Shown: piece after piece, positions 24,821-61,532 of the stretch
Layout: the number at the start of each line of letters is the position of its first letter
Position numbering within the stretch: the stretch's first letter is position 1
Assembly (NCBI GenBank): GCA_964188305.1
Contig: OZ076885.1
Length of the DNA stretch: 64,000 nt
Strand: one strand, 5' to 3'
Origin: Podarcis bocagei
Lineage: Eukaryota
Program-made: the position numbers and the translations under genes
The notes under the pieces: generated by a model
Seen by the model: only the letters and a program-made list of their open reading frames with translations
What the model was told of the DNA's origin: nothing
The model's database searches: none

Positions 24821-25987
24821 TCACTCCTCACTCCTAGTCTAAAACAAAGTATTGCAAGATTCCAAGCCAGTTCTTGCATGCTGTGGCCATTGCTTATAGT
24901 AGTATGTGGGGTTGTTAGACTCAGCCAGGCTGGAATTTCTCAGATGTTGTTTGTATGATAAATGAATAGCCTGATTCCTCTGGTAGTGCTGGCTCGGGGT
25001 CAATAAGGCTTCTCAGGCCAGGAAGAGATGAGAGGTGTAGAGAAGGGCATGTGAATTGACTTCCCTTAGTCTTTTTACACTCCTTTAGAAAGTCATCATC
25101 TAGAGATGATGCCTGAACAAAAAACCCTGGGAACAGGCTTTTCAGCCTTGGGAAGGTCTATGACAGAGCAAGTTGAACAACTGGCTGTAGTGTAAGAGAC
25201 CAGATACCAAATAAATTGAATCCTTGTCAATCAAAAGCACAAAGCAGTGGAGCTACAGTGTAGAGAAGTGTATTGTTGCTTTGCTAAAACTGCTGCTCTA
25301 AAACTGGCAGACAAGAGCTCTTCTTTGCTTCATTTCCCGACCACAGTCCTTTCCTGACCACAGTCCTTCGATAAAATTTTAAATAGCACTTAATGGATTG
25401 GCAAAGGGCATTTTTTTCCTGCTCCCAGTGGTCAAATTGGAGAGCTTAGTCATGGTTTCCCCTTCCATTCTCTTTTCAGAGCAATACCATCTGAAAACAG
25501 TAGCTCCAGAAGGGGCCTGGGCTTTGCAGAAAAGTGGCTTGATTTTTTGTCTTATGTTTCGAAACAGGATCTAATTGAAAGCAAAATTACATACATATAA
25601 AACATTTAATCCTTTTTAAGGGAGAAGTAGCAGTAGAATTATGATGGCAATAAGGGGTGTCTGAAGCCATAGCAGCTGCTCTTACATCCAGATGAACAAA
25701 GGTGATTTAGTACAAGCAGCTATTTTACTGTTAGTTTCCAAAACACTCTAAGCTAACACTTGGAAGAACACAGCCGGTTTCTTACAGAGCAATCATTAGG
25801 ACTTCAGGTTCTCTGAAGCACAAATTCCCTTTATTCAGCTCATAAATCTGCCTCAAAGGTGTCCTTCTGCTCCTGTGGGACCAATTATTCCTCTCTTCCA
25901 GTCATGCTTTGTGCATTCAATTTGTCTGGAATTGTAACATGCATTATGAAATTTATTTTGAACAAACAAATGTGTTTATTTTTGCAG

Positions 25988-26161
25988 ACTATGCTGTGAC
26001 TGCACACTCCAAGCTGGTCATCATCACTGCTGGAGCCCGCCAGCAAGAAGGCGAGTCTCGCCTTAACTTGGTTCAGCGCAACGTGAACATCTTCAAATTC
26101 ATCATTCCCAGCATTGTCAAGTACAGCCCTGACTGCAAGCTGCTTGTTGTTTCAAATCCAG
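25988..26161 (+). CDS. LDHA: LDHA coding exon with substrate loop (..[33 protein letters not shown])
   Basis: AG/GT boundaries, 174 nt. Confidence 0.97.
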
Positions 26162-27834
26162 GTTGGTTGTGTCCTATTCTTAACTGCTTATGGACCATAA
26201 TTCACCCTCCAGTCCTTTGAAAGGAGAAATTGCTTGCTTCCAAGAAGGAAATCGGGGAATCCTGAAAGCATTCCAAGTTTTCCCTTGGCCATGAAAAGGA
26301 AAATATCTATTCCACCAGGACATCATGGTTTAACACTTAAGTTTCAATTCTGAAGTGGGACCTGCAACTAAATACCGTCCTATGGAGTGCTCCTGCTCAG
26401 GGTTCCATTCAGCCATGCCCTTTCCCAGAACACTCCATTCTCTTACCTCTTTCCATGTCCCCACTGTATCTACTCAGCAGCCAATCATCATTCCATGCCC
26501 ACTGATGATGCTGTCTTTCATTGGGCTGTTACAGGTCACATCCTTCCTTTTCTAAAGATTTCATGGACTTCTGGGTTCCATAAACTTGCTCATAACTCCT
26601 TTTAGAGTGTGGGTGGTGCTGTTTTGGCTATATAAGGATCTTCATTTGAAGAACGATTTTGCTATCTAGTATCTATGATGATTGGAACTATGGTGGTGAC
26701 AATCGTGGCTAGAGTCTGTTAAGGGATCACATCATTCCACTGTCTCATGGGAAATACAGCAGTACTTCCATGTTTGACTGTTAGGGTGCAGTCTACAGGA
26801 AACGCCTAACTTTTCCCCATGTAAAACGAGGTGCTGTGCCTAGTACCTAGCTGATAGCTCATTTACACTATTACTCTCTGTGACAACACACTTGCACACT
26901 CTTCTCTGATCTATTTACACAGTGGCTGCATTCAGATGCCCTGGTAAATCATGGTGGATGGACCATAGCTCAGTGTTGAAGTGTGTGTTCCTAAAATAGG
27001 AAAGTCGAAGGTTCAAACCCTGACATCTCCAGATAGAACCAAGAAAGATTCCTTGGCAATGCCAAGCTGGATGGACTATGGCCACAACTCTGTAAGGCAG
27101 CTCTTGAATTCCTATGAGCCCTGGGGTCATGTTCTCACACCCAGCCCTTGTGGCTATGAGGTTGGAAGCTTTCTTTTTGATGGGTTCAGAAGAACAAATA
27201 AACTGTAGTTAATAAGGAAGTGAAAGCTTCAAAACTCGTCCTCAGGGCTGGAGAAGATGGGAACAGGTGCAAGCCCAAGGCTCTCCTAGTCTTGTTTTGA
27301 CCCCAGTAAGCCATAGCTTACCATGATGTCTGGATGCAGGAGTTCAGGAAGTTAAACTAGAGACTTTGGCAAAAGGAAAGAGCTTTGGTTGCTCTGCTGG
27401 GTAAGAGCTTGGGGAGGTGTTGGGATACTTGCAAGATGCTATGTCCTGCTTCAGTCATGCCTGCATGCCCTGGTCCCAAGTGAGATATCGCTCCCTGCGT
27501 CCTCTGTAAGACACAGATAATTCTGGATCGGTGCTGTTAACTCACAGGGGACATCTACTAGGAAAGTCAGAACCATAGTACAGAACCATCACTCTTGCCT
27601 GAGCACCTCATATTAAAATGAGAAGATTGTAAAGAAGCTCCTCAATATTCCCTCTGCCCTTTAACTGCTGCCTGGAGCCAGGATGGTTTTGGCATTTCAT
27701 CATTAAGGTAGCCTTGTGTAGAACAGATGAAATTAAACAGCCTCTCTTTGTGGAGAAGGATTGCAGATTCCCAGTGCTCTTGAAGCTTGTCTGTCTTTAA
27801 TAGTGCATATGACAATCACTTTCTAACCAGATGA

Positions 27835-28116
<282 letters not shown>

Positions 28117-28180
28117 TGATGGTAACGGTACCTGGTGAAAAGGAGAGCAGCAGAGCATTTCCCAGATCTACCTCTTGAAT

Positions 28181-28390
28181 GTAGAATCGTAGAGTTAGAA
28201 GGAACCTTTGAGTAATTTAGGCTAGTCCCCTGCTTAATGCTGGATCCTCCAATGCAGGGTGCATGTACAGCATCCCTGATAAAGAACCATCCATTGTCTA
28301 CTTAAATGCCTGCAATGAAGGAGAGCCCATCGCCTCCAAAGGCAGTGTTCCATTGCTGAGGAATTCTTATCATTAGGAAGCATCTCCTAA
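28181..28390 (-). mobile_element. Diverged CR1 LINE 3' fragment
   Basis: TAGAATCGTAGAGTTAGAAGG tail and similarity to the reverse complement of 47400-47610. Confidence 0.5.
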
Positions 28391-29596
28391 CACTGGGTTA
28401 GGTAAAATAGTTTTCTCCGGACGTTGCTGAACTACAGCTCTTATCATTGACCATGATGGGCTGATGGGGAGTTGGAATCCAACAAATGACAGCTTTTTGG
28501 AAATTTGAAGACTGCTATAGAATCGTTGACCACATCAGACTTAGGTGCTGCTGGGCAAACCCACAGAGAGGTTTCCATACTCTTCCCTCTGTATGGAAGT
28601 TAGGAATATAATCTAGCTGTCCCTACTGCATGAAGTAACACTAGATGGTCTATATTTGACTTGAGCAGCTCTGTTGCAAAAGGTCAGCTTTGTAATCCAA
28701 GTAGGCCAAACCCTACCAGGCTAAATTCTACCCTTTACTCCTAACTGGGGAGTTCACAGTAAATCCTTTTCATGTCAGAGACCCTTGCATGCTGGTGTTC
28801 AGTAAAGCAGTTACAAGTTACTTGTCTTGGCCCCTCTGTCATCCTATATTTGGGAGTTGTGTGATCTCATACAGCCCTGCACCAATACTGCCACTAGAAT
28901 TCTGCTTTGATGCATAAACTCAGATTCTACTCTACTACTCCTCTATCCCGTCTCACAGCAGTGAATATAAGCACAATCCCCTGTTCTGGGGTTTCTCTCC
29001 CTCTCTGACACCCCAAGCCAATTGGTGGTGGGGAGGTAGAGGGGAAAGCCACAGTGCGCTAGCACAAGTCCTTGCACGAGCTTCCATTAGCAGGCTTCAT
29101 TACTTGAATCTGGCCCTCAGCTGTGTACTTGGCTGCTTGCTTGCCTTAGGTGAGCAGCTGCTGCCGCCACACTCATCCTTGAATGACAGATTATATGCAG
29201 TGTATGGTTGCCAAGCCCTGTGTGTGTGGTCACAGCACTTTTGCAGTCTTTCTTCTGCCCCAAGGGCTATGGACCATTTTAGGAAGATGTGTGTGCATAG
29301 CCACAGCAGGATGAAAACCCACCCTTTTCCCTGGGTTTATGAGTTAAAAGGAACAGGTCAGTGGCTAATCCAGCATGGATGAGCACAAGGATCCATCTCC
29401 ACTGCCTGTTAGCCAAAGTTTAAGGGGAAGGTATGTGTGCGTAGCAAGATTCTTAGTAATTATAAAACTGTACTTGGTACATCATGCTACATTAACTGCC
29501 CAGCTCAGATCTGTTCGAAACACTTGTGAATCTTACTTTCTGTGAAGTTGGAAAACATTCTAGATTGCTCAGAAAAATCTCCTGCATTTTATTCAG

Positions 29597-29714
29597 TGCC
29601 TGTCTGGAGTGGCGTGAATGTTGCTGGCGTCTCTTTGAAAACTTTGCATCCAGACATGGGGTCTGATAGTGACAAGGAGAACTGGAAAGAAGTCCACAAG
29701 CATGTAGTAGAAAG
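29597..29714 (+). CDS. LDHA: LDHA coding exon ([40 protein letters not shown])
   Basis: AG/GT boundaries, 118 nt. Confidence 0.97.
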
Positions 29715-30672
29715 GTAATCTTTGTCTCGTCTCTGTGTGAGAGAGGAAATGGGGTTCCACTGAGCTTCCAGAAATTGCCTGTGTCTCATTTTCAAGGATG
29801 CCACAGCCTACATTGCTTCAACGAGGTCCCCTGATCCTTAACAGAGCATTTTTGCCCCATGACATGCACTTAACTTTGGACCAAACCCCTTCGTTTTCCC
29901 ACAATATAATCTCCAATTGTCCAGTTTTTAAGAAATATTGATTTAGAGTGCTGTTTACAGTGTTCAGATTACTGGAGAGTGCTTTTCCAGTGTTGGAAAC
30001 CACTGTTTAGCAGTTAATTTCCCTTTGTTGATAGATACTATATAGCAATCACTATATTCTGCACTGTGGAATTTGAATGTGTTTTGAAAGCAAAATAAAG
30101 TAAATTCTGCATACATTTCACATTCCTGAAGGACTGATCCATTTACAAACTGCCCTGGTTTACGTAACATGATGGGTAATAGCATTAATGTTTAACTACC
30201 ATTACATGTGAATTAGCAGCTTGTTAGTGTAGGCGTTCAGAAATCCAGATTGCTTCACCCTCATTCTTGCTTGCGCTACATGCAACAACCACAAGCTGTG
30301 GCTGCTTGTGCCATATAATCTGAACCCTGGTTTTAATCTTTCTAAACAAACCATTGTCTAACTTTGCTCAGACAACCTGAGAAGCCAAGGCTGGTAGTTT
30401 CTCTTTTCGCCCCCACCCCTAAATGGTGTGGCTAGGAAAGGAGAAGGGACACTGCAAGGACTTTGAGCATGCTGCTCATTTGTATTTAATGTTTAAATAT
30501 TAACTATGGCTTGACAAAATATGCAAGCAAAGCTACTCCATGCAGGCACCAGCATCTCTACAGGGAAAGGCTAGTAGCTTGCTTGTAAAAATAATAAATT
30601 AATAGTTCTAATGCCTGCAACAGATGCCATTTGGAGATAGAGGATAAGTAGCCTCAGATGGACTTCACCTGA

Positions 30673-30954
<282 letters not shown>

Positions 30955-33152: not shown

Positions 33153-33621
33153 TTACTAGACACATGCAGTAACCCGCACAATAACTTGAATCAGCCAAAA
33201 TGGGAAAAGGTAAAGAGGGCATTTGGTTGGCCATACAGCTACAAGCACGTCCTCAAGACCCAAAAGCTGAAACTGATCCCACAAAACCTGACCAGACAGT
33301 GCATTAAATGCCTCACTCAGACCTGTTACAAGAAGAATATATACACAGTGGTCCAACTCATCATGGGAAGACAAGTTATTCTGTACTACAGGCTTATAGT
33401 TTCCTGGCTGTCAGGTGTGTAAGGCTCTAAGCTACAGCTTTGCTGATGTGTGAGACAGATAACAACAGTCACACTCTGGTACCATCCAGTGCACTTGAAA
33501 GCCCTCCCTTCTTCCCTACATTTGAAGAAGCATTAGAGTTAAGAACTAGGAACACAACTACTGGTTTCAGTGGAGCAGAAAAACTACATGAACGTACCTT
33601 TGAATATTTACTCAAACTTAC

Positions 33622-33861
33622 CTTTAGAAAGATATCAAGATCAATAACTCCACGTCTCAATGCTTCACCCAGGTAAAAGATGGTATCTTCAATGGCATTT
33701 TCCTCAGCATACAAGTTCAGAATTTGTTTGTAAAGTGGCGCTGTAGGAACAATAACTTCGTCTATGTCATTATTTTCTGACTGACTCTCCATTTTTTCCA
33801 AGGCAGAACTCAGCTCTTCGTCTTTCTTTTTCAGGAGGTCAATGTTCTTGTCAACTTCAGC
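33622..33861 (-). CDS. TSG101: TSG101 exon 9 (AEVDKNIDLLKKKDEELSSALEKMESQSENNDIDEVIVPTAPLYKQ...DLDIFLK)
   Basis: AG/GT boundaries, 240 nt, internal PTAP motif. Confidence 0.97.
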
Positions 33862-34986: not shown

Positions 34987-35189
34987 CACTTCCTGGTCTA
35001 GGCGAGTTACCATCTCTTCAAGCTTTTGGTGACCTTTTTTCAAGTCTTCCTCTGTGCGCTTCAAGGCATTGAGCTCTGCCTGGGCACGGTCCATTTCTTC
35101 TTTCATTCTCCATCTCAGCTTATCACTGACTGCTGAAATAAGCGAAGCTCGAATGGTATCTTCGCTAATGGTGCCATCTCTGCTGGGAC
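34987..35189 (-). CDS. TSG101: TSG101 exon 8, coiled coil (GPSRDGTISEDTIRASLISAVSDKLRWRMKEEMDRAQAEL...LDQEV)
   Basis: AG/GT boundaries, 203 nt, phase-1 acceptor. Confidence 0.97.
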
Positions 35190-37063
35190 CTGTACAATAA
35201 GATTCAGTCACAGAATCAACCCCTTCTACTTCTAAGGAGATTTGTAGGTCATGACAATCTGTTTGCAAAGGTATTTGAGGCTAAAAAAAATTAGAGTATG
35301 TTAAAACAGATTAATTTTCAGACATAACATTCCAAAAGGTGTACCCATGAACTTCTAAGTTGCTTAATAATCTATTGTACTTTCCCAACTTAAGGAGGTT
35401 CTGCCCATCTTCTCACAGAGTGCAACTGTGAACTTGAACCAGCAAATATTTTAAAAGCAACCATAGAGCTTTCAAGTGTTAGCTAACTAACACATTAGCT
35501 AATTATCACAATGAAAAAACATCGTCCTTGAACACAGGTTTAGCTCTCAGCCACTCAAACTTTACTTTGGAACACCCCCAAATTCAAAATGTTTTAATGA
35601 AAACACAGAATGCTTCTGTCAGATTACTAGCTCTGGTTATTGTTTGAGGAGCACTGAGTTGAGCTACAAACAATGAAACACTAGTTTATTTTTTATACAA
35701 ATATTTCTTTTGCTTTTGCATCAACCATCATATAAAATATCTAGTCATTTTTTATCACCAAGTTCACATGAAACCTCAAATGTTTGCCATGCACAAGATG
35801 GTCTTTCCTTATTAAAACCTTTCCTTCCAAACACTCACATCCACGAATTCACATTGCACATTCAAATCTACAAGTTTTTCACTTGTCTCCTCACAGACAA
35901 CACTGTCTGAAAGTTTCCTTACATTGAGGACTTGAAATTTTATAAAAAATGCCCTGTCTTAATCACTACCGTTACTAATCTACAAATATATTTTAAGAAA
36001 GTATTCAATAAACTGTGTAGGTTTCCAAACATCAAAATTATATCAAACCTAGCAAGAATTAGCAACAGCACTCTAGTATAAAAATTGTATTTTACCTTAA
36101 CACACCAACTCAAAGAGCCCCACAGGTTTCATATGCAGCTTGAATTTGCCGCCATCCATGTGTTCTCTTAACATTAAAACTCTTCTTCTTACAGTCTCTT
36201 TCACAATTATCAGTCCATTCTTTTTGCTTTTGAGGTGTTCCCACTGCCCCAAATAGCACTTAGTATGTAGAAAGTGTGGTATGGGTCCATCCCAGCAGTT
36301 TCCTGACCAGCCCACCTGCAGCAATTTTGTCCACTCAGCAAAAGTAAGCAAAGTACGGAAAACATCTGTTCATGCTGTCGTTTCTGAATCCGCTGTCTTG
36401 CTGCTGCTTCATTCACTCTGGTGGGATCTTCACGCCAAAACAACTTTATGGAATCACAGTCTCTGATTGGAACTTCCGACTCCAGACTTGGGATTTCACT
36501 TTATGAGGATACATTGTTGATTCATTTTCAGTATTTCATTCTTCCTGCTGTCATTTTCTTTTCGTTAAATGGATATAAGCTTCTTATCTTCAGAATAAAA
36601 TTAATGACGGATGAGTATCCCCATTTCATTTCTTCAATGCGTTTAAAGTCCAATTACCAATTTCAGTGAACACCAGATGATTTTTATTTGTTCTCATTTC
36701 CATTCTTGTCTTGGGTTCATGTCCAACAAAGTTCAAAGTCTGACGCTAATGTCCATTATGTTGATCATTGCTCCCTAAAGTCTTTCTGCTCTTCTCTTGA
36801 GTATGAATAGGCGTGGTATCATATGTAAGGAACACTGAAAACTGGTGTCAGATAAAGAAACTCTTCTGCATAACAAATGTTGAGCAATTTAAACCAAAAA
36901 TTATTTGAACACAAAACATTATTACAGCTCAGGGTTCTGCACATTGCTGATTCTAAACATTTGCGTATCATCTGAGTTCCCCCCATGAAGCTTTTATCCC
37001 AAAAACAAAACAAAAAACCTCTCCAAACATTGGCATTATTAATTTTCTATTATATTAAAAGTA

Positions 37064-37093
37064 TAATAATAATAATAATAAATAATAATAATA

Positions 37094-37143
<50 letters not shown>
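37064..37143. repeat. (AAT)n microsatellite
   Basis: Directly visible. Confidence 0.95.
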
Positions 37144-37144
<1 letters not shown>

Positions 37145-40100
37145 GATTTTAATAAGACATTCTTATGGGACAAGGGCCCCAAAACATCCTGGAAAATCTC
37201 CAAATACCAACACCTCCAAAAATGCCTCCCACTTTTACATAATTACTGGTATGTAATTTTTAACAGTTTCAACTTGAATTATATGCATATTTCTGAAGAA
37301 TGAACAGGCATACAGACAGTTACGCTGATACATGCTGCTAGATGTATACAATTTGTAAGGCGAGCTCAAATAAAGGCATCAAAACTCATGTTAACAAATT
37401 CCCGCAGGTTCCAAAATGACAGCTAAGAAATAAGCAAAGGCCAGAGCCAACATCCTTAGAATTGTTGTTGCGTTGCTTTTAAAACAAGCCATATTCTCAT
37501 TAAATATAAAAGTTGTTGTTAAAACATTTATTCAAATGCAAGAAAACGAGTATAATTCAGGCTAAAACAGAGATGGAAGCCAGGATATTGTTTGATATTC
37601 TTTCAGCTTTAGAGGGGCACCATGGAATGTGTTGTGTCATCAAGTGCTGTCCCAACTACTGAAAAGACCCAAGGCAAAACAGTATGTAGTAGACGTTCTA
37701 TAATATAATCTCAGGTGATTTGAGTGAACTGCAAACATTCAGACGTTTTAACTAGCCAAATATAGGAGTGTAACTTAAGTGATCTAAGCAAATATGTTTA
37801 TGTACATCAAAAGATTTAACCCTCTAATCCCTCTCAACTGATTTAAGAATTCATCAAAGTTTGCCTTTAAGAGATTAAGACCAGACTAGCTGCTATGTGG
37901 TTGGACAAATGAAAACAAGTATTCTGGCAGACTTAAGGTAGGTTTGAAGTGATGTCAGCATGTGATTATCTGCATTGCCAAATTCCAAGGGCTACTTTTG
38001 GTTGAATTTGAAGTACCGTGTCAAATCACTAAAGAGGTTCTCTTAAGTGTCTTCCCCATTCACCCTGTGTTGCATATTCCTGTACCTGAAGACAGCTGCA
38101 CGCAAGAGTTTACTGCAAAAATTGGTCCTAAATTGCAACATGTTGCATCGTTTTCTTCTGAATGATCTAGAGAACAGTTTCAACAAAACAAATGAAGGTT
38201 CTGTTCTGAAACTATCCATTTCTGTGTTTTCCATACCAAGTTTTATCTTCTTCTACTACTGTCTAGACTTGTTCTGTTTAAAACGAATTATTCAGAGTAA
38301 GAAAATCATGAAGGCAGTTTCAAAAAGTAACTTAACCTTATTTTGCTAATCCCCTGCTTCAGAAACTGTATTAAAATTGGGCAACAGCAAAATAAGAAAA
38401 ATACCTCAAAAAAGAAAAACCTGAACAAAAACGAACAAACCACTTGGCTCAACTCAGTAAGCTGTGCTAAAGAGGAAGGTAAACACTGTTCAAAGCAACT
38501 ATGGGTGATATCAAATGTTACTCATTCAGAAGTAGACCCATTTAGATCAATGGACTTAAGCCCACTTATTTCAGTCGGTCTACTCAATGCTAATTTAGGA
38601 TTATCAGCCTATATGGTCATCCAGAAAATGATATTGAAAAAACCAGCAAAACAAAGTCCTATTCAAGTGCTAGACCCACATTTCCATCTCTCTCTGCCCC
38701 AGGTTTCTTTCCACCATAAGCATATATCATATAAATATATCTTAAAACCAGTTACAACTTCTTGGTCAAAGCTGTTTATTTATGAAGCTTTTGTCTAGAG
38801 CTTAAATAAAGTCAGAGAAATAAGTCTGCATGTACAAATATATGGTTTTAGATGTACAGAGAACAAGACAGGCTACCACCATATACCAATTTATACCAGG
38901 AGCACTAGATTTGAAGAGCACCTTCAAGAACATGAACCCTTAACATTTTCAATCACTTCCATAATTAGCCACCCTTAGAGAAGAGTTCCTGGCATGCAGT
39001 CATACGTCCAAGGGAAAACTCAGACATTTAACCTTTGCTATACAGAGTCTAGTTTCAGAACTGACCTTATGGTACTGACCTTACAGTACTGCAGACTAGC
39101 AGTTGACTCAGACAGAAAAGAAACAGCCAAATATCAACTTGGCACTGGAAGAAACTGATGTTTAATTTAATTTAATAATGATGACTATATATTACCACCA
39201 GCAGGACAATGTGAAATGTAGCATAAACAAAGTAATAATGGTGTATTCCTCAATTATTAACTAGAAAAGAATTTTAATTATCTTTTCAGTTGACTTTTCA
39301 GGAGGGGTATGATGTCAAACAAAATATTAACACTGAAAGATGGAAGTGCAAGATTAAACAGACTAAATTGCTTTAGCTGTATCAGAACTGCCAGAGTAGA
39401 CAGTCCATTTTAAAGGATTAATACATTGTGGAAGTCCATCAGCTGGGGGCCCAATAACCAGTTTGAATGACTTCCAGAAAATACTGCCTTACTAGGCCTC
39501 TGTTTAGTTGAACTTCAGGTAAGACATTTCTTCAGATAAGGTGGTAACCTCCACCCCCACCCCACAAATTAAGTACCTTAAGATTAACACCGCCATAAAC
39601 CCTTAAAATGCAGCTTATATTCTTGAGCAAAAAAAACCCCATTCTCTGAGAATAAAAATTGAAGGGAAAGAACATTGATATCAGCCTGGGCTCAATCTTC
39701 ACTGAACCTTTTACCAGGCAATGCCAGGAATTTAACCTGACACATCTTCAGCAGACAAAATATCTGCTCATTGAGCTATGGTCTCTTCTTTCTCAGACCC
39801 TGCTTCTAGTGGCACAACATCCAAGGTTGGAGAGCCCTCCATAATGGCCCCCATGAGCTGCAAGGAATTTCCAGCAGAAGGAAATTCCACCTCTTGCCCA
39901 GTGGAAATGCTTTTCACTTGTGCATTGGGATCCTGCTCCATGATAACATAAGTGAACTCTGAACACCTGGATGTTAATATATTTACGGAAAGAAATCTTA
40001 GAAGAATGAACCCTGATATCCATCTCTACTAGTCTTTTTAGGGGATTCCATTCTAATTATATAACTGCTACTTACCCCCCCAAAGCTTAATTAAGTCTGC

Positions 40101-42794
40101 AAATCAAAGAGACCCTGTGGAAGATGTTGCTCTGCTCACTGCTATATTCCAGTTCCCCAAGAAACTGGAGTATTCCAAAAAGGACAAAGATTTCTGAAAG
40201 GCCACCTTGTTCGTACAGATGTGCGAGCAAGGGAGACGCTGTGAGCTAACATGAAAATAGAAAAGCAAACTTAATATTTGTTGTTCATTCATAAACATGC
40301 AACATACTTGAAATACTATATACCAACCATAAGTAAACCATATATAGTACTTTAACAGCCCCAACAAAATGAATACCATGGATCCAAAAAGCAACACTTT
40401 TCCCTTGCATTCTCCCAAAAAACCACCCTTGAGAGTAGAGCGAACCTCAAGAACAGTATGAGATGGGTGGTGAGGAAATGCAGTTGAAGGGGGAGATCGG
40501 TAAGCTGCCTTGTGCAAGTAGAAGTCCTTTCAACTTATGTAAGACCAAGTCTGGATCCAAAGCTTTACTTTTATCTCATGCAGATAATGGTAGTAACAGC
40601 TCTTGACAGTTTTGTTTTAATAAAATTATGAGTAGTAGTAGCTTACTTAAACACACTATTTTTATACAACCTAAATATAGCTGAGGAAAGTATCACCATT
40701 TCTGGGATGTTTTGACTGTGGGCTGAATCAAGAAGTGTTTCAACAAGTACAAACAGCAACCCTAAGAACATCTTTCCTCAATCGTCTTTATAAAAAAAAT
40801 TCACATCATTCAGTACTAAGTGTTCACTAACAAAGAATGTAAGGACTAAGAAATAAATACTAGTATTTTATTGTTAGAACACAAATCTCCAAGTTATACA
40901 AATTAGATGGATCAAACAGCATTGCCCAACATCAAAAAGGTAGAAAAGATAGGCCCAGATCCATATTGGAACTTAACGTCCCTACTACAAGCAAGTATTC
41001 AAAATGAAGGCCATAGTCAGTTGTAAGCGCCTGCCATGTCCTTAAGGGAACGAGCTGGACTGCACTATAAACATGTAGAATTCTGCTCCTGTCCCTCCCA
41101 AAGGCTATATAGTTCTCCCCCAATCTAGTGGGAAATTTCCAGAGTGGTATGCAAAGAGAGGTTATGTAAAAAAATATAAATGTAATCCAAGCATTCATCT
41201 TAAACTGAAGTAAAGTTCAATTCTAGTCTGCTACATTCTATTCCTGTTGCCCTTGCATTCCAGAATCACATTTGTGCTGAATTTTAGCTTCCAACATCAA
41301 CCTACAAGATTGATATCATATTTGGAAGTACTGACCATTTAAAACCACAATACCAACGAATCCAGAATTCGTCTGGATATTGACCTGATTTCAGAGAAGC
41401 TGGGAAGGTGAATAAGCCACTGAAGTTAAGCTCTCTCTTGTTTGTGAAAGGCACATTACAGCATAAAAGCAATTTACATAAAATGTGCTACCGAAACACT
41501 GAAGAATATTGTCTCATGTGGCTTCATTCACAACCAACTCTCCTTAAGAATAATCAAGTTCACGGCAGGGTGCTTTTTTTAAAATAAAAAGCATGTTTCC
41601 CTGTAATTTGTTTCCTAGTAATTACTAACAGTGATTGTGAAAAATGGCCGTTCTATTAGATTATATTTTAAAAGCAAATTCGGATGCAGGCGATCTGCCT
41701 TTTTTCCAGGAAAGGTGACACAGTAATGCCAAAGCAAAACATGGCAAAACTGTCATACAGTCACTGTCAGACAGTTCAACAAGCTTCAAGGTAACCAGAA
41801 TATGTACCTTCACACAGTTTTAACAAGTGCCATAATAGCTCTGGGCAGTCATGAACTTTTGCAATGAATGTCTTGCAGAATAACATTTAAAACTTTCAGT
41901 GTCTAAAACTTATATAGGATTTTGGATGTGAAATTCCTGGTTGAATAAGCCATGAAGGAGCATCTGGTGTTTATGCTGGTTTTAGTACTTTGAGCCTAGG
42001 CTCTTTAACTCAGTTTCCCATTATGTCTGAAATTGGGAGCACTGGTTTAAAGTTGATTTACTAACCAGCATCTGAAATCTGATTAGCAAACTTGTATTAA
42101 GCCTCAATTCCCCATTTCAGAGGAAAGTGTGACTTAAAAGCAGCTTGGGCTGAACCTGGCACACATGGGGAGGCAGGAATAAGCTTGATGCTTATTCTTG
42201 CTTAATGAACTATGGTTTATTAAGAATTTTACCTCTGAGCCTGCCATATGTTAACACTCATAACTAGAGTAACATGTGAGTCCATGTATAATGAAGCCCT
42301 AATGCTTCAGTTTGTTTTCCTGCTCTAGTCAGACTCACCTTTTCCAAAGTTACATATTTTTTATGATGTTTTTTCTGATCTACCCACATAAAATAGCTTT
42401 GTAAGCTATTACTGCACCCATATTTTAGGTAGCTATCACTCATGCTATTCACTGAGCATTTTTTGGATGGGAATATCAATCAGGGAAACTAAACTGCTTG
42501 GCAGTGTCTCTAAGCACACTGTAGAAGCAAACTGAATTCAGTGGGGTGGGGAAGTAAACAGAATTTAAAAAAAACAGTTAAATATATCGGCAAATGTCTT
42601 ACTGCAAGTGGTTGCAGAACAATGCCACTAGCAATTACATTACTAAATTAATACCCACCACCATATTAACAGTGCAATTCTGCTGCCTGAAAATTCAAAT
42701 TACCACCGTTCACAACCTTCTAATAATCTCTGTCTGTAGAGACCTTCCATACTTGCTTAAACTGAAATCTATTATTCCTTCTCCAAAGAAAAAG

Positions 42795-43375
42795 TTAGAT
42801 CAAAGTTTCCAAAACACTTAATAAATCCAGGTTGAAGACATCTGTGCCACTTTCAGACAAGAGAACACCATCTAGATGGAACAATCCTGGAGGCTCTGGG
42901 ACAAGTGAATCGTGTTTGATTATAATCCCTCCAATACGTTCCATAAAACTGCTGATTTCCCGATTTACTCTCTTCCTGCTTTTCTCCATAAATTCATGGG
43001 ACATATCTTGGCTCCATGCTTTGCGGGGTACAATATTAGACCAGACAAGGATGCTGTTCTTGAATGTTATCTTAATATGTATTATATCTTTCTTCATTTG
43101 TCTTATGAGATCATAATCTGCGTATGTCCCAAGGTCATTTCCTCCTAGATGGACCACCAATATATCAGGATCTGTTAGACGCCGCCGCGTGTGCAATAGG
43201 CTGGGTATCAACTGATCCCATGTCATGCCACTCTTTCCTAGCCAATGTAGTTTGGCATCCTCCAGTCGAATGCCCAACTGTGGGCCAAAGCTTCTTTCAA
43301 GTGCTCTTTTTTCTGCCCAGAAAACGTAAGAATGACCACATATCCATACCTGTTTCTGCTTTCTTCTGCCATCTG
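42795..43375 (-). CDS. SGNH/GDSL-hydrolase-fold coding exon (Ngaro/DIRS retrotransposon hydrolase-like) nested in TSG101 intron 7; putative alternative terminal exon
   Basis: Uninterrupted frame with block I VWICGHSY, block II WLGKSG, block III PDILVVHLGGND and block V DGVLLSESG. Preceded by branch point TTAAT, a pyrimidine tract and a TAGCAG acceptor in phase 1. TAA at 42797-42795; minus-strand AATAAA at 42216-42221. Confidence 0.8.
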
Positions 43376-45434
43376 CTATTAAGAGAACAAACATACATTA
43401 ATGCTTCATAAATTTTGTGGCCCAAGCACCTCCTGAAAACTTTATTCAGTGTTGTCTGAATTATTCCATGTAAAAATCAAAACATGAGACACCTCTATCT
43501 TAAATTACATGGCATAATAATCCATAAAGTCAACTCTTTATTTGAAGATTGGTGTGTAAAGTTTACAGGTAAAAATGCCTGTATGCAAGTTATAAGATCA
43601 ATGGAAAGGAATGCATGCTCATGTACCCTTTTGATCAATCTTACAAGAGCAACTGAAAATATCTTTTCTAAATAAAGTTGCTAACAATCCATTTAGATCT
43701 TGATAAAGTATATAGGTTTGATAGATGTGCTCTACTCAGAATGAAGTTCTTCCAGATTTTTTTCCAAAATTAACAAAAGGTCAGGAGCAGAAGTCCATAC
43801 CTTTCAAGCAGACCAAGCAGAAGAGAAAGCTTCGGTTCTTAAGAAAGCCCAGGGAGTAGAGTTATACTTCTCTATTAAATCTTATGTAGAAATTTATGTA
43901 ACCATTTCCACGCTTTGCCTGACAGGATTAATTTTTGTTGCCATATTACATCTCCATTTCTAAAAATTCATTTTCTAAACAAAATGCTAGAAAGCTTGCA
44001 CTAGGGATAGATTTTTTATTACTGCCCTGAAAGAAGAGTAATTTGATCTCTTCTAAACAATGTAGACCTCCAGTATTAAACTACAGAAAATTATCAGTTT
44101 TACATTTTCCCTGCAATTTTCAACTTGGTTTTGTTTATGAAGTCTTTTCCTGACATGCAATCCAGTCAATTTTATAATTGTAAAAATGGTTTTATTGTTT
44201 TTAGAGTTTGCATCTTTTGTATTTGATCTTATTGTACATAGCTTCAATAGCATATGGCTCTGAAGCAGTCCATAGACCTGTAAAATAACGATAATAGTAA
44301 TAGCTCAACAAAAGTGATGATAATTTTTGGAGTTCAAATATATTCTATGTGACATTGGACAAGAAAACAGTGGATGATGATGTGGCCAGGGATCTTGCAG
44401 TCTTTGTGCTAAATAAGAATGTGCTTTCTAAATTATACTCTTTTGAGGGTTTTCAAGTTTTTGCTTATCACTAGAGGGAACAATACTTTCAGATTCTTAG
44501 GACTTCTCTCCTAAACAGGTTTGGTAGTTCTGGGCTAAGTAGGAACACAGGTGAGCAAGCATTTCAGCACCCAAGAATTACGCTGAATGTGAAACAGAAG
44601 AAAGCTGTTGATTGGCACCTTTAGCTTACAGATCAACAAACTTCACAAGATGAAAATCTGGTGATGGTAGCTGGGCTACGTCATGAACGGCAGTTCTACA
44701 CTTGCATCACACACACAAAAGTGAAAAAAAATTGCAGTTTGGGAGTGTACTGGAAAACACGATGGAGTCAAGGATAGCTTGGTTTGCTTCCAGTTAAGCA
44801 CGGAACTCAACTGTATTTTCAGTGCTACTCGACAGCAATCAAGGCTTCTTCACATCATCCTTAGGTACTGTTCTCCATCCTTGGCTGACATAGCAAAAGG
44901 CTTGTAAATAGGCTGTAGTACTGCATCTTGGACTGCAGTTACTCCACACTGGCCTCTTCATTCTTGTGCCCAAATGATGCTGCTGTTCAAGTTCCTGCTA
45001 CATTCAGTGGTGTGATCAAATGAAACCCACCCCTTTCTCATCATTGAAAAGTTCATAACTACAAGATCATTCCCCCAGTCAATAAGAACATAATAAATAT
45101 GTAGGCTTAAAAAAAAAAAGCCTTCGGGCTTTAATTTATCTTGGACCTGCAAACATAATATTTTCAAACACATGTGAACTTCATTACATAAAACAGTTCA
45201 ATAAAAATGAAGTCTGTTGAACAGTGAAAACAGTTAATGATTGTTCCATAAATCAAACAATGGAGAAAAAAAATGAACATCTAGCATGGTTAAAGTGTAA
45301 TGTAACTGATGTTTTTGCCACGAGGCACTTAATGTCCATCTCAGAAATAGGTGTATTTGGATTTGCTTTATGCTGTATATTTAGAATGAGCAATCTCATT
45401 ACATTCGGAAAAAGACACTTTCAAAGCTACTCAC

Positions 45435-45532
45435 CCACAGTAGTTACAGGAGGCTGAGAAGGGTAGTGTTGTGTGCTAGTTGTTGGTGGAAATGATCCGC
45501 TAGGGGGAGGGTAAGGATAGCTTGGGTAACCA
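45435..45532 (-). CDS. TSG101: TSG101 exon 7, proline-rich (SGYPSYPYPPPSGSFPPTTSTQHYPSQPPVTTV)
   Basis: AG acceptor, phase-1 donor GTG G|GTGAGT, 98 nt. Confidence 0.93.
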
Positions 45533-48247: not shown

Positions 48248-48314
48248 CTTGGGTTAGGTGGTGGTCCAGGAGGGAAATGAGGCATTCCACTTGGCATTCC
48301 TGGCATATAGGAAG
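48248..48314 (-). CDS. TSG101: TSG101 exon 6 (SSYMPGMPSGMPHFPPGPPPNP)
   Basis: gcacag acceptor, AG|GTAAGC donor, 67 nt. Confidence 0.93.
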
Positions 48315-50766: not shown

Positions 50767-50893
50767 AGTTTGGTGGTCCTGTTGCCTGGTAAGGTGGGTA
50801 GGCTGCTGAAATGGTAGGCCGAGAGAAGACTGGAGGTTCTTCTCCAAACACCACAATCATCACTTGAATCAAGCCAATCAAATCTGATTGTGG
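50767..50893 (-). CDS. TSG101: TSG101 exon 5 (PQSDLIGLIQVMIVVFGEEPPVFSRPTISAAYPPYQATGPPN)
   Basis: AG/GT boundaries, 127 nt; end of the UEV domain and the GPPxxxY motif region. Confidence 0.96.
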
Positions 50894-51380: not shown

Positions 51381-51544
51381 ATGTTTCCATTCATGTAGAT
51401 ATGGAAGGTATATCTTGCCATTTGCATCCACGTGCTTCCCAGTTTTAATTGTCATTGAACTAGTTGGCTTAACAAAACAGATTGGTGGATTGTATGGATA
51501 TGTATCCAACAGCCACAGACATATTGGGATATTGTATGTGTTAC
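51381..51544 (-). CDS. TSG101: TSG101 exon 4, UEV core ([28 protein letters not shown]...YLHEWKH)
   Basis: AG/GT boundaries, 164 nt. Confidence 0.97.
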
Positions 51545-51972: not shown

Positions 51973-52038
51973 CTTTGTAATTTACAGGAATGGTTCCTGT
52001 GAGGCTCATCAGTTCTCTTGATGAACCATCATTAAAAA
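51973..52038 (-). CDS. TSG101: TSG101 exon 3 (VFNDGSSRELMSLTGTIPVNYK)
   Basis: AG/GT boundaries, 66 nt. Confidence 0.96.
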
Positions 52039-52758: not shown

Positions 52759-52843
52759 CATATCCATCCATTACAGGCTTGAGGTCTTTGTACTGGGTAA
52801 TAACACTGACAGTTTCCTGAACAGTCAAGTCTCTGTACTTGTA
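52759..52843 (-). CDS. TSG101: TSG101 exon 2 (YKYRDLTVQETVSVITQYKDLKPVMDGY)
   Basis: AG/GT boundaries, 85 nt. Confidence 0.96.
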
Positions 52844-56559: not shown

Positions 56560-57110
56560 ATTCCTGCTGCCAGAAAGCCGGCCTCGTTTATTCGTGTCTC
56601 GCTAGGATATTTTTGTGGGGGCCCCCCCAGGCAGCAGGAAGAAGGGAAAGATAATGACTCTGGAGCACGTTTCGCTCGGGAAGCGGCGTGAGGTGAGGGG
56701 AGAGGGGCGGCATGGAGGCCCCGCCGGGTGGGCGAGCGCGGAGGAAGCCCCGAGGCTGTTCCCCCGGCAGAAGCCCGCTGGGAGGGGCTCCCCGGCCGGC
56801 CTCGCCGTTACCTTGCCAAGCATCTTCTTCAGCTGGCTCTCCGACACGGCCATGGCGGCGGCGGCGGCAGCGGGCCCTGCCGGCCGCCGGTGGTCGTCGT
56901 TCCGCGCCCCTCCTGCCGCTCCTCCGACTCCCCGCGCGAACGAGGAAACCTGCCCCGGCCTCCCTTCCGGTGCTTCCTTTCCACCCGTTTCCGCTCGCCG
57001 GCGCGACGTCACTTCCGGCGGCCAGGTGCCGCATGCGCGTGAGCGTACACTGCGGTCACTGACGAGCCCATAGAGATAGTAACGTGGAGAGGGTCACGCA
57101 GGCGCCGCCT
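56560..57110 (-). promoter_or_regulatory. TSG101: TSG101 CpG-island promoter with overlapping ETS-CRE motif and NRF1-like site
   Basis: Minus-strand CCGGAAGTGACGTCG at 57018-57004; GCATGCGC at 57031-57038; CpG-rich. Confidence 0.8.
56812..56853 (-). CDS. TSG101: TSG101 exon 1 CDS (MAVSESQLKKMLGK)
   Basis: Strong Kozak GCCGCCGCCATGG, donor AAG|GTAAC. The ten exons sum to 1182 nt (393 aa + stop). Confidence 0.97.
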
Positions 57111-59690: not shown

Positions 59691-59855
59691 TCAGAGTTTC
59701 AGCTGCTGTTGAAGATCATGAATTGAGGCAGCCGTGGACTGAAGCTCCTGTACCACAGTACCTTTATCCAGCAGTTTGATGACTTCAGTCACTCCACTGA
59801 TTCCAAGCACACAAGGCACACTTAAAAATACTTCAGAATTTATATTGTAACATCC
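59691..59855 (-). CDS. UEVLD: UEVLD last coding exon ([27 protein letters not shown]...IHDLQQQLKL*)
   Basis: tctag acceptor, TGA at 59693-59691; LDH-like C-terminal exon of 165 nt; located upstream of TSG101 as in other vertebrates. Confidence 0.93.
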   Translation of the reverse strand, partial: GCYNINSEVFLSVPCVLGISGVTEVIKLLDKGTVVQELQSTAASIHDLQQQLKL

Positions 59856-59961
59856 CTAGAAAAGGCAAAACATAGTATTGGGTATATTAGAATTCCTGGG
59901 ACCCACAGGTTAATGTTTCCTCTATTCTAAAAAAGCAAAATCAGATCAGCCCTGTGTTTAC

Positions 59962-60085
59962 CTTCACCATCGTTGATATGGAATGTACTTTCCTTTTATC
60001 ATTCAATATACTGTCTGCCAGATCAGCTATTGACAGACCAACAGACCAGGATTTTTGGCCTCTTCCTTTCAGAACTTCCATGGCT
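59962..60085 (-). CDS. UEVLD: UEVLD coding exon ([42 protein letters not shown])
   Basis: AG/GT boundaries, 124 nt. Confidence 0.93.
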
Positions 60086-60976
60086 CTATATAAAAGCAAA
60101 AGAATCAGGATTTACAATGCACTTTTTTTAGCAAGCAATATGCCCTCTTTATAATCTCCATACGTCACACTTGTATATCAACAAGCGTGGTACACATTTT
60201 TGTAGTGGCCTTGTTCACATGTTGTGCTAGCAAAACTGTCTAAATGTGAACAAGCAAGCGTGAGGGTACTTGCAGTAAGAAAATGCAGTTGCTTTGCTCC
60301 TCCCATGGTTGTCCTCCTTCCACACTAGCTATGCCATGCAAAACCATGGTTTGTTTGGCTTCGTGCTGCATTTGAACCCAGACTCATGGTTTGTCTGCCT
60401 CAGACAAAACACAAATGATAAGCCAAGAACAAACCATCAGAATGCATGTGATGGCTTTCGACCAATCAAAAGGTTACAGCAAAATGGTTACGTATAGATT
60501 ACATTTTCATGGCAACAGGTCTCGAGCCAAGCAGACGCTAACTACATTATTTGTTGCTAATTTTATGACTAGCAGCAAAGCATGTGTAAGGAATTTTCCA
60601 CCCTTGTGTCTGCCCCCTCCCAACATCCATAGTCATTACTTCAAGGTTTATGAGGTGTTAGCTGTCTAGAGTGGGCTACTTTCTTAGGTACAAGACCCTG
60701 AGTAAAGTATACGTATTTTAAGAATAGCACTGCTGACAGATAAGACTTCAACTAGAATTTGAGGCCTTTTATACGTAGCCTGATCAAAACGTGTTCAAGT
60801 AAAAATGGGGTTTAATAGGTACGTAATGAAGGTTTCCCTTTCATATCATGTTACTAGGGTGTAAATTAAAATTCAGAATTAGGCTGCACTCCTATATCAA
60901 TTTATATTGGAATAAGGCCCAGTTAACTCAGTGGGACTTACTTCTGATTGTGCTGCCACATGTCTAAGTGTTTTAC

Positions 60977-61064
60977 CTGTTAGCTAAGAGATGCTGGGCA
61001 TTTTGATTTGCTATATCTTCATCCTGATGACTTGTCACTGAATTAGAAGCACTCCATGCTGCCA
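60977..61064 (-). CDS. UEVLD: UEVLD coding exon (VAAWSASNSVTSHQDEDIANQNAQHLLANR)
   Basis: attcag acceptor, AG|GTAAAA donor, 88 nt; phases 1 and 2 join the flanking exons in frame. Confidence 0.85.
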
Positions 61065-61532
61065 CTGAATAGGATAAAATTACAATCAATGTTGTTTTTA
61101 AACATTTGCATTTTTATCTCAGGAATAATTTCTCTGTAGAGTGTGTGCTTTCCATTTTGCTTTTAAAGAGACCAGTTGTAGGAATTCTATTCAGAGGAGT
61201 ATATAACTCACAGATGTGCAGAAAACACAGAATACGCAATAACCCGTCAGACAAAGAAACTGCATGAGAAGTCAGTGACAAAGCAACCACCACCGCAATG
61301 TAGTGTTAGCATAAAATATAGAATTGGAGAAGCTGTCTCTGGAACAGAACCACAAACTTCTTGTCATGGCTATCCATTAAATAAATAACAGTAATTTAAA
61401 CTGAAATATCTCCATATACAGCACTTCTATTAAAAAATAATCACAATGTTTTCTGAAATTATCTCCTGATATAAAGTACACATGTGGTACCCTAAACTGC
61501 ATAGTAAGCTAAGTAGTAAGTCATCATTTTAC

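Follow-up and report, generated by a model that had tools for sequence, protein, structure and literature searches.

An alternative 3'-terminal exon of TSG101 in the lizard Podarcis bocagei with a probably retroelement-derived and non-catalytic SGNH-fold domain

PTAP-dependent budding is inhibited in dominant-negative fashion by truncated N-terminal fragments of TSG101. In ESCRT-I, TSG101 binds VPS28, VPS37 and MVB12/UBAP1 through its coiled-coil stalk and its Vps23 core, or steadiness box. The neighbouring gene, UEVLD, encodes a UEV domain joined to a lactate/malate-dehydrogenase-like domain (PMC12513931). Host-transposase fusions, such as CSB-PGBD3, SETMAR and KRABINER, arise by alternative splicing (bioRxiv 10.1101/2020.05.07.082677). 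In Ngaro-like elements of amphibians, an SGNH ORF follows the tyrosine recombinase (PMC9210276); the ORF1p esterase of ZfL2-1, a CR1/L2-type LINE (PDB 4c1b), binds acidic phospholipids and liposomes (PMC3905857).

Here, an alternative 3'-terminal exon of TSG101 is described in a 64,000-nucleotide stretch of the Podarcis bocagei genome (contig OZ076885.1; hereafter, the window). We consider it likely that this exon gives the lacertid gene an ESCRT-I-independent isoform which ends in a retroelement-derived pseudo-esterase. Like the dominant-negative fragments, the isoform has the UEV and proline-rich region and no ESCRT-I assembly half. However, those fragments are laboratory constructs; the isoform is natural and conserved and has a C-terminal domain that is predicted to be folded. 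As in UEVLD, a UEV is joined to an enzyme fold in place of the ESCRT-I assembly modules, but UEVLD is a separate gene which arose by duplication and fusion, contains another fold and has no mobile-element origin. The arrangement is closest to that of the host-transposase fusions: a mobile ORF lies sense-oriented in a host intron with an acceptor just upstream, and provides an alternative 3' end alongside the parental transcript. The differences are that the TSG101 module is a retroelement accessory SGNH ORF rather than a DNA transposase, and that the exon is far older (amniote-wide) and apparently catalytically disabled.

TSG101 is encoded on the minus strand (Table 1). When splicing is modelled in the window, coding exons 1-7 total 42+85+66+164+127+67+98 = 649 nt. 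Exon 4 matches the TSG101 UEV chains in the PDB at E 7e-37, and exon 7 terminates with GTG G/GTGAGT at 45435, in phase 1. The initial annotation of this DNA is corrected in one respect: intron 7 terminates at the canonical exon 8, which matches TSG101 in PDB 3iv1 (E 3.9e-29). The segment matching Pfam Vps23_core (E 1.9e-17) is bounded by a stop-free stretch and not by exon limits. LDH-like exons are found just upstream of TSG101, on the same strand and within the window.

Table 1. Features of the TSG101 locus in the window, in the order of the minus strand
Feature	Position	Strand	Evidence
TSG101 coding exon 1, ATG at 56853	56812..56853	-	Splice model; N-terminus in stop-free segment
TSG101 exon 2 (UEV)	52759..52843	-	Splice model
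TSG101 exon 3 (UEV)	51973..52038	-	Splice model
TSG101 exon 4 (UEV core)	51381..51544	-	Splice model; PDB match
TSG101 exon 5, UEV end and start of proline-rich region	50767..50893	-	Splice model
TSG101 exon 6 (proline-rich region)	48248..48314	-	Splice model; turtle conservation
TSG101 exon 7 (proline-rich region), phase-1 donor TGG/GTGAGT	45435..45532	-	Splice model; turtle conservation
TSG101 intron 7, host of the alternative terminal exon	35190..45434	-	Exon 7 donor and exon 8 acceptor
3' splice region: branch-point-like TTAAT, AG-free pyrimidine tract, first AG of TAG/CAG	43376..43408	-	Cross-lineage alignment; blastn
Alternative terminal exon, coding part including TAA	42795..43375	-	Frame, homology, dN/dS, splice and structure models
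Putative 3' UTR as far as AATAAA	42216..42794	-	Weak evidence: AATAAA only
Canonical TSG101 exon 8 (coiled-coil stalk), skipped by the isoform	34987..35189	-	PDB match
Stop-free segment with canonical Vps23 core (steadiness box) exon	33472..33861	-	Pfam match

The initial annotation proposed that intron 7 holds, on the TSG101 strand, a stop-free frame of 581 nt preceded by TTAAT, an AG-free pyrimidine tract and a tandem acceptor. All of these elements are present. The stop-free frame spans 43397-42798 and is followed by TAA (42797-42795); no stop-free stretch on the minus strand between 30 and 64 kb is longer. TTAAT occupies 43401-43397; from there to the tandem TAG/CAG (43378-43373) the tract is pyrimidine-rich and contains no AG. 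Use of the second acceptor places the exon start at 43372. That both acceptors fit the phase of the exon 7 donor is confirmed by the splice model and by annotated isoform pairs; the model also reproduces the proposed product, as exons 1-7 plus 581 nt give 1230 nt, or 409 aa and a stop. The exon encodes a 193-residue alternative C-terminus, the first codon of which spans the junction; a basic linker is followed by the SGNH-fold domain. The AATAAA noted earlier on the minus strand is found at 42221-42216 and is the sole AATAAA or ATTAAA within 1.5 kb past the stop. Both the position and the sequence of the poly(A) signal and putative 3' UTR vary between lineages.

The exon was initially regarded as hidden. 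It is not, because many reptile, marsupial and a few other mammal annotations include it. RefSeq, Ensembl and other pipelines annotate chimeras of 406-409 aa as TSG101 isoform X1 or X2, and do so within the same genus: for the 409 aa derived from the window, identity is 99.3% with RefSeq isoform X1 of Podarcis raffonei (3 mismatches, 0 gaps) and 98.8% with the isoform of P. lilfordi. The annotated models and the exon in the window are the same object; the exon junction and the 408/409-aa length pair match and there is no structural difference. Examples are XP_042302597.1 (Sceloporus), XP_015744717.1 (Python), XP_019407292.1 (Crocodylus), XP_072475760.1 (Notamacropus), XP_023593445.1 (Trichechus) and the models of P. 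raffonei, P. lilfordi and P. muralis. Distribution is wider than squamates. Chimeras are annotated in at least 20 squamates, about 20 turtle species, Crocodylus and Alligator and, among mammals, in the echidna Tachyglossus, seven marsupials, two Trichechus species (manatees) and Tenrec. Full-text literature searches that paired TSG101 with SGNH, GDSL or esterase returned no relevant paper; the exon is already in annotations, and we found no paper describing a TSG101-SGNH isoform.

In many species the isoforms form pairs one residue apart, as the tandem acceptor predicts. The alternative-terminal-exon model is upheld by independent pipelines, which give the same protein and the one-residue-shorter variant in dozens of amniotes; all chimeric isoforms in the databases are computed gene models. 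The N part (215-216 aa) of the chimera is identical to that of the canonical isoform in five species. In the chimeric models, Pfam finds only UEV, joined in some species by Lipase_GDSL_2. The TSG101 loci of one bird, the rat and one frog show no trace of the exon; it is dispensable in birds and at least in rodents. The bird and rodent losses and the retroelement origin described below were unforeseen in the initial annotation.

The orthologous position is established at the locus itself in a turtle and is read from gene models in the remaining lineages. In Carettochelys, the orthologue sits in a gene with UEV and Vps23_core and shares its strand; it is bracketed by the exon 7 match and an intron block farther downstream. 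The exon has 78% DNA identity to its syntenic turtle counterpart; TSG101 exons 6 and 7 are also conserved with turtle. The exon ORF matches public proteins at E ~1e-100. Amino-acid identity of the exon between mammals and lizards is 68-82%; when squamates are compared with echidna, identity is 74-77% in the SGNH part, 81-86% in the N part and 93-94% in the canonical C part. Across species, exon dN/dS is 0.16-0.35 (10 pairs), that is, not near 1, which indicates purifying selection. The protein matches, the turtle identity and the dN/dS values rule out a chance ORF.

Lizard, snake, crocodilian and turtle differ hardly at all in the 3' splice region, and the acceptor in the turtle RefSeq model is that of the lizard. 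Conservation ends ~33 nt upstream of the exon (the blastn block against turtle ends at 43408), so there is no conserved promoter-like block. This bears on whether the frame is an independent nested gene, with its own promoter in intron 7 and a free-standing SGNH protein as product (199-aa ORF, ATG at 43394 to TAA at 42795); under this reading, the TSG101 chimeras are gene models that join too much. An ATG and six-codon leader are indeed common to the squamate copies, and RefSeq treats the exon as a separate gene in two turtles (LOC142014737 in Carettochelys and LOC123368998 in Mauremys mutica). The exon also carries unspliced flanks in Logan: 5/5 contigs with the exon hold it with intron flanks only and no exon 7 junction, and are unspliced or genomic. 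We nevertheless judge a nested gene quite unlikely. Turtle and crocodilian lack the lizard's in-frame ATG or have it in another frame, yet the splice-acceptor motif does not vary; nothing in the lizard corresponds to the first exon of the turtle LOC model. The phase match to exon 7 is found in all lineages, and the identical junction comes from independent pipelines.

Among Logan-derived ORFs, canonical TSG101 transcripts were found and no chimera. This result, and the loss of the exon without replacement in bird and rat, would suit a non-productive regulatory exon, in which the intronic exon and its poly(A) site mainly serve to cut canonical TSG101 output and the protein is functionless; intronic polyadenylation exons are common regulators. 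Such a role by itself is very improbable. Six or more major lineages have kept the 193-codon frame open for >300 My, and selection on RNA signals alone is insufficient given the low dN/dS and the mammal-lizard identity.

The nearest outgroup of the exon is a multi-copy vertebrate family. The exon has 1720 representative homologues, many of them multi-copy within single genomes; one 90% cluster contains eight Rhinatrema proteins spread over several chromosomes. Amphibian, fish and gecko homologues are multi-copy and retroelement-borne. At one caecilian locus, the SGNH ORF (14369-14962) is the last ORF, downstream of an RVT_1 ORF, and direct repeats of 170 nt (8205-8374 and 15699-15868) flank both. 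This SGNH ORF has 43% identity to the exon (E 3e-49). The ORFs between the RT and SGNH ORFs have no Pfam match even at E<=5, tyrosine recombinase included, so assignment to Ngaro rests on layout and literature. By this kinship, the SGNH domain of the exon appears to be ancient and retrotransposon-derived, with a Ngaro-like source suggested by layout. It is homologous in sequence to the Ngaro-like SGNH ORF, but the TSG101 exon is single-copy, syntenic and host-selected, and has no catalytic His. The mobile character of its relatives could be taken to favour a recent transposon insertion or an intronic pseudogene. However, no other retroelement ORF of the caecilian locus matches the window, and the exon is 68-98% identical to TSG101 copies but only 38-45% identical to mobile copies; this pattern, turtle synteny and dN/dS refute recent insertion, pseudogene and chance ORF alike, and leave them practically no probability.

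The initial annotation had predicted UEV, a proline-rich region and an SGNH-hydrolase fold, and this architecture is borne out by annotations and by structure prediction. The AF2 model of the exon-encoded domain (pLDDT 95.8, pTM 0.92) has a three-layer alpha/beta/alpha SGNH fold. Foldseek returns 164 PDB matches at E<=1e-3; the best 50 of the 164 are almost all SGNH/GDSL enzymes, with TM ~0.7. Matches at probability 1.00 include GDSL lipases, PAF-AH Ib alpha, TesA, sialate O-acetylesterases and the ZfL2-1 ORF1p esterase. Pfam Lipase_GDSL_2 scores 22.7 bits (E 1.5e-4), below its gathering cut-off of 32.9. PAF acetylhydrolase Ib alpha and bacterial GDSL/TesA esterases rank among the top structural matches (TM ~0.7, probability 1.00) and have blocks I-III in common with the domain, but identity is only 13-20% and the domain lacks the catalytic His. 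The ZfL2-1 esterase is likewise a retroelement SGNH fold (Foldseek E 6e-7), but superposition is poor (TM 0.47-0.56) and sequence similarity is undetectable; unlike the probable TSG101 pseudo-esterase, it is an active enzyme.

Active sites were compared by aligning 18 orthologues of the TSG101 clade with 54 other homologues as outgroup. In the TSG101 clade, GHS (with the nucleophile Ser), the oxyanion G and GGND (with the oxyanion Asn) of blocks I-III are invariant (18/18). The block V catalytic His (DxxH) is replaced by Leu in 18/18 and the catalytic Asp column is D12/N6; among the other homologues, 51/54 retain the His and 54/54 the Asp. A separate alignment has the motif (D/N)GVLLS in 21/21 orthologues. 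The general-base His is lost in every lineage aligned, so the SGNH domain most likely acts as a non-catalytic binding module. The lipase/esterase-type fold proposed earlier thus stands, but the enzyme is probably inactive; the domain is a superfamily member by fold, falls outside the catalytically competent enzymes and is most likely a pseudo-esterase. Ester hydrolysis through a substitute base is unlikely. Such a rewired enzyme is entertained because Ser, Gly and Asn are retained and a clade-specific His (position 166, fixed in 18/18; Arg in 40/54 relatives) lies five residues before the lost one; His14, which adjoins the nucleophile Ser, is also invariant. If active, the isoform would deliver enzyme activity to ubiquitinated or PTAP-bearing cargo. 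Against this, loss of the canonical His and free use of D or N at the triad Asp form a pattern typical of relaxed constraint on catalysis.

The likely history is as follows. Early in amniote history or before, a retroelement SGNH-hydrolase ORF would have been placed sense-oriented in TSG101 intron 7; a 3' splice site matching the phase of exon 7 would have been gained there or have come with the ORF. Splicing of exon 7 to the alternative exon, followed by intronic polyadenylation, would then yield in this species a 408/409-aa protein made up of the UEV, the proline-rich region, a short basic linker and the SGNH-fold domain. The coiled-coil stalk and Vps23 core are encoded by the skipped exon 8 and later exons; as these are absent, the isoform presumably cannot assemble into ESCRT-I. 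It would recognise ubiquitin and P(T/S)AP motifs as a free protein, independent of ESCRT-I. The initial annotation suggested an antiviral decoy or a lipid adaptor. The idea of a membrane adaptor draws on the binding of acidic phospholipids and liposomes by the ZfL2-1 esterase domain; the pseudo-esterase would position the isoform, for example on acidic membranes. Alternatively, the isoform may compete with ESCRT-I-bound TSG101 for common ligands. The likeliest role is that of a UEV adaptor or competitor which would operate independently of ESCRT-I.

The host gene is TSG101, as matches to the UEV, coiled-coil and Vps23_core domains make clear; the last of these lies in an exon 3' of exon 8 (Pfam, E 2e-17). 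Its coding exons were placed by a splice model built from GT/AG sites in the window, with an annotated lizard protein as guide. Canonical exon 8 sets the end of intron 7, and the alternative terminal exon (the SGNH exon) lies inside this intron. Its frame is the longest stop-free run on the minus strand in the 30-64 kb part of the window; the ORF listing gives 199 aa from an ATG at 43394. The branch-point-like TTAAT is ~22 nt 5' of the acceptor, and AG is absent from there to the TAG/CAG tandem acceptor. Exon 7 ends in a phase 1 donor (GTG G/GTGAGT). Exons 1-7 total 649 nt, also ending in phase 1, and joined to the SGNH exon they give a CDS of 1230 nt, or 409 aa. The initial annotation had given the same frame, acceptors, exon 7 donor and product length, and the window sequence and splice model agree with every one of these numbers. 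A single canonical poly(A) hexamer, AATAAA, is found within 1.5 kb past the stop; the distance from stop to poly(A) signal ranges from 64 to 1038 nt depending on lineage and is uninformative as a conservation test. An Rfam scan of the window returned no family.

Features of the TSG101 region and its neighbours in the window
Feature	Coordinates	Strand	Basis or remark
118-nt tandem repeat	55-655		GC-rich; 5.1 copies, 97% matches
Degenerate array	654-852		48-100-nt period
Lactate dehydrogenase gene exons	25846-30954	plus	Ldh_1_N E 1.8e-19; Ldh_1_C weak
Canonical TSG101 exon 8	35189-34987	minus	PDB 3iv1 TSG101 coiled coil, E 4e-29
Putative conserved non-coding element	38918-39069	minus	in TSG101 intron 7
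AATAAA	42221-42216	minus	
TAA stop	42797-42795	minus	closes open frame
Codon of His 166	42880-42882	minus	
SGNH exon	43375-42795	minus	2 kb inside intron 7
Open frame	43397-42798	minus	ORF listing
TAG/CAG tandem acceptor	43378-43373	minus	
Branch-point-like TTAAT	43401-43397	minus	
TSG101 intron 7	45434-35190	minus	
TSG101 coding exon 7	45532-45435	minus	splice model
TSG101 coding exon 6	48314-48248	minus	splice model
TSG101 coding exon 5	50893-50767	minus	splice model
TSG101 coding exon 4	51544-51381	minus	splice model; PDB UEV chains, E 7e-37
TSG101 coding exon 3	52038-51973	minus	splice model
TSG101 coding exon 2	52843-52759	minus	splice model
TSG101 coding exon 1	56853-56812	minus	splice model
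LDH-like coding pieces	59694-61758	minus	just upstream of TSG101

The exon was initially considered hidden. This does not hold: it is present in the public TSG101 isoform X1 and X2 models of many amniotes. A HMMER scan of 1.84 billion representatives with the SGNH ORF returned 1720 homologues. Among them is a 409-aa protein, matched at residues 214-409; its cluster entry identifies it as the Sceloporus "tumor susceptibility gene 101 protein isoform X1". This cluster holds 409-aa X1 and 408-aa X2 models, and includes Python, Elgaria, Pogona, Sphaerodactylus, Rhineura, Heteronotia, Candoia and Euleptes. A second search, in which the C-terminal part alone was scored, found the chimeric isoform in further squamates (Anolis, Varanus, Naja, Crotalus, three Podarcis species, Lacerta and Zootoca), about 20 species of turtle, crocodilians (Crocodylus and Alligator), a monotreme (echidna), seven marsupials and, among the afrotherians, two manatees and a tenrec. 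Aligned with the Podarcis raffonei X1 model, the joined 409-aa protein of the window has 99.3% identity and no gaps, which points to a Podarcis-like lacertid as its source. X1 and X2 differ by exactly the residue predicted from the tandem acceptor. In five species, the N part (215-216 aa) of the chimeric model is the same as that of the canonical one; the two then continue for 192/193 and 177 residues, respectively. Annotation is inconsistent across species; the SGNH exon is annotated as a separate gene of 220-230 aa in Carettochelys (10001-10113 of the TSG101 locus, L001) and in Mauremys mutica (LOC123368998), and lies within TSG101 isoform X1/X2 in other turtles. Full-text literature on TSG101 or UEV with SGNH, GDSL, esterase or alternative terminal exon yielded no paper on the isoform, and the mobile-element domain-capture papers examined do not mention it. 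The chimeric isoform is already known to databases, as an object in public annotation, and is undescribed in the searchable literature. Reasoning from the sequence had predicted the SGNH exon exactly, though it was already publicly annotated.

The Carettochelys orthologue lies within a gene with UEV and Vps23_core, on the same strand. L001 and the window share four blastn blocks: exon 6, exon 7, the SGNH exon and a non-coding stretch. The SGNH exon is the strongest (78% over 621 nt). The non-coding block (~150 nt) matches L001:16704-16855 at 70% and includes invariant patches, one with a TAATTA-like core; it lacks a long open frame, gives no Rfam match and looks like a conserved non-coding element.

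In codon alignments of the window, a turtle, a crocodilian, an elapid and another squamate, dN/dS is 0.16-0.35 and dS is 0.36-0.98. A purely regulatory, non-productive exon is very unlikely. A chance ORF or a young insertion has a negligible probability; both are rejected, as is a pseudogene. The branch point, pyrimidine tract and tandem acceptor are almost unchanged in all five copies, and similarity declines ~33 nt 5' of this splice region. A 2-nt difference puts the lizard ATG out of frame in turtle and crocodilian. The separate RefSeq gene model in turtle uses the same acceptor, and its first exon has no lizard counterpart. For these reasons an exon fed by the upstream donor is favoured over one with its own start, and an independent gene nested in intron 7 is rated quite unlikely. 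The alignments fit a real, selected coding exon that is spliced from upstream. Logan contigs (L002-L005, L008 and L009) carry the SGNH exon with intron-like flanks only and give no junction evidence either way; canonical TSG101 transcripts did appear in Logan, and no chimeric ORF was seen there.

In the SGNH ORF, the Pfam family Lipase_GDSL_2 scores below threshold (22.7 bits versus a cut-off of 32.9). The fold is shown by prediction and Foldseek, because a sequence search against PDB gave chance matches only (E 0.11 and 1). An AlphaFold2 model of the SGNH domain, made with a 72-sequence alignment, has a pLDDT of 95.8 and a pTM of 0.92. Foldseek matches it to SGNH/GDSL enzymes at a TM of about 0.7 (bacterial GDSL lipases, PAF-AH Ib alpha, TesA and sialate O-acetylesterases) and, more weakly, to the ZfL2-1 LINE ORF1p esterase (TM 0.47-0.56).

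Active-site columns were counted in 18 aligned orthologues of the SGNH exon (the TSG101 clade) and in 54 relatives outside it. The nucleophile Ser is found in 18/18 and 52/54, respectively, and the oxyanion Gly and Asn are kept in 18/18 and in 51-53 of 54. The block-V His, present in 51/54 of the other homologues, is Leu in all 18 members of the clade; the triad Asp, which is invariant outside (54/54), is Asp in 12 of them and Asn in six. Since the His is replaced throughout and the Asp is variable, the domain is probably a pseudo-esterase, and would have been one since before the lineages split. A rewired esterase that is still active is unlikely in the face of these two changes; what speaks for it is a His fixed at position 166 of the clade (18/18; Arg in 40/54 of the others), five residues N-terminal to the catalytic His that was lost. 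His 166 may stand in for the catalytic base or serve a new binding function. Between squamates and the monotreme, identity is 74-77% in the SGNH part, 81-86% in the common N part and 93-94% in the canonical C part.

The closest kin outside the TSG101 clade are 38-45% identical. These uncharacterised proteins occur in amphibians, lungfish, fish and lizards and are frequently multi-copy per genome, and gene models fuse them to unrelated domains. At a retroelement locus of the caecilian Rhinatrema bivittatum (L007), the homologous ORF (14369-14962) comes last, 3' of an RVT_1-bearing ORF. The element is ~7.6 kb long and lies between 170-nt direct repeats (8205-8374 and 15699-15868; 98% identical). 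Its SGNH ORF alone matches the window (43%, E 3e-49); the other ORFs leave no remnant. In amphibian Ngaro-like retrotransposons, an SGNH ORF follows the tyrosine recombinase (PMC9210276). The layout of the caecilian element resembles a Ngaro-like one; a search for a tyrosine recombinase in it gave no Pfam match even at E<=5. Three fish models of 1300-1960 aa (P0027, P0031 and P0034) have cold-shock (CSD/CSDE1-type) domains and a C-terminal SGNH domain. Two gecko models, P0017 (Sphaerodactylus, 3112 aa) and P0019 (Paroedura, 2677 aa), have 4-7 tandem SGNH domains. These fish and gecko models may be real genes or chained repeats. A Pfam scan of such large homologues for retroelement domains found cold-shock and SGNH domains only, and so gave no help in typing the element.

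When the TSG101 loci of Parus major, Rattus norvegicus and Ascaphus truei were searched for remnants of the SGNH exon, all tblastn matches were at E>0.1, and single-sequence nhmmer gave none at E<=10. Among the best 120 of 593 UEV-region matches, Vps23_core is not swapped for SGNH in any TSG101 model of a bird, boreoeutherian, amphibian or fish. With one frog as the non-amniote outgroup, these comparisons are most simply read as a capture on the amniote stem lineage, after which birds and at least some placentals lost the exon.

In CSB-PGBD3, SETMAR and similar host-transposase fusions, the mobile-element ORF is intronic, has a splice acceptor immediately upstream and coexists with the parental transcript (bioRxiv 10.1101/2020.05.07.082677). 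The TSG101 SGNH exon follows the same mechanistic pattern; however, the captured piece appears to be a retroelement accessory ORF, and the capture far older. A second, independent joining of UEV to an enzyme fold may be present in the window as a UEVLD-like gene (PMC12513931). One of the LDH-like coding pieces just upstream of TSG101 shares 52% identity with the window's plus-strand LDH exon; Pfam alone gives these short pieces no score. They fit the UEVLD gene, a natural fusion of UEV with a dehydrogenase fold. The lactate dehydrogenase gene itself is convergent with the TSG101 3' end. Near the start of the window is a tandem repeat with a period of 118 nt, followed by a degenerate array.

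Use of the intronic terminal exon would give a protein with UEV, the proline-rich region, a basic linker and the pseudo-SGNH domain, and without stalk or Vps23 core. By what is established for ESCRT-I, this protein would be unable to enter the heterotetramer and would retain the ubiquitin and P(T/S)AP pockets. The pseudo-esterase would act as a binding module. Membrane placement of the free UEV module is the preferred guess, because the sole biochemically studied retroelement SGNH domain binds acidic phospholipids and liposomes (PMC3905857); it would result in competition with ESCRT-I-bound TSG101. In a bolder reading, the isoform, amniote-wide and >300 My old, would naturally antagonise or re-route ubiquitin- and P(T/S)AP-dependent sorting, independently of ESCRT-I. 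It might, for example, be a built-in brake on TSG101-recruiting elements and viruses, in which a domesticated retroelement pseudo-esterase supplies inherited membrane or ligand targeting. Its lack in the human, mouse, chicken and frog models would explain why it has gone unstudied. This proposal is speculative and, taken as a whole, has a small chance of being right.

TSG101, which many enveloped viruses recruit, forms the entry point of ESCRT-I. To our knowledge, nearly all work on it concerns human, mouse or yeast, none of which has the SGNH exon. A second, strongly conserved TSG101 C-terminus, predicted to be unable to build ESCRT-I, occurs in most non-avian reptiles, monotremes, marsupials and afrotherians; it appears to end instead in an SGNH fold of retroelement origin whose active site is disabled. 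Its interest lies in its age, its apparently dead active site, its probable retroelement origin and its absence from every standard model organism. If expressed as annotated, the isoform would be a natural experiment on a free UEV and proline-rich module, lost repeatedly (in birds and at least rodents), and a rare case in which a host exon was captured from a retrotransposon accessory ORF rather than from a transposase, gag or env.
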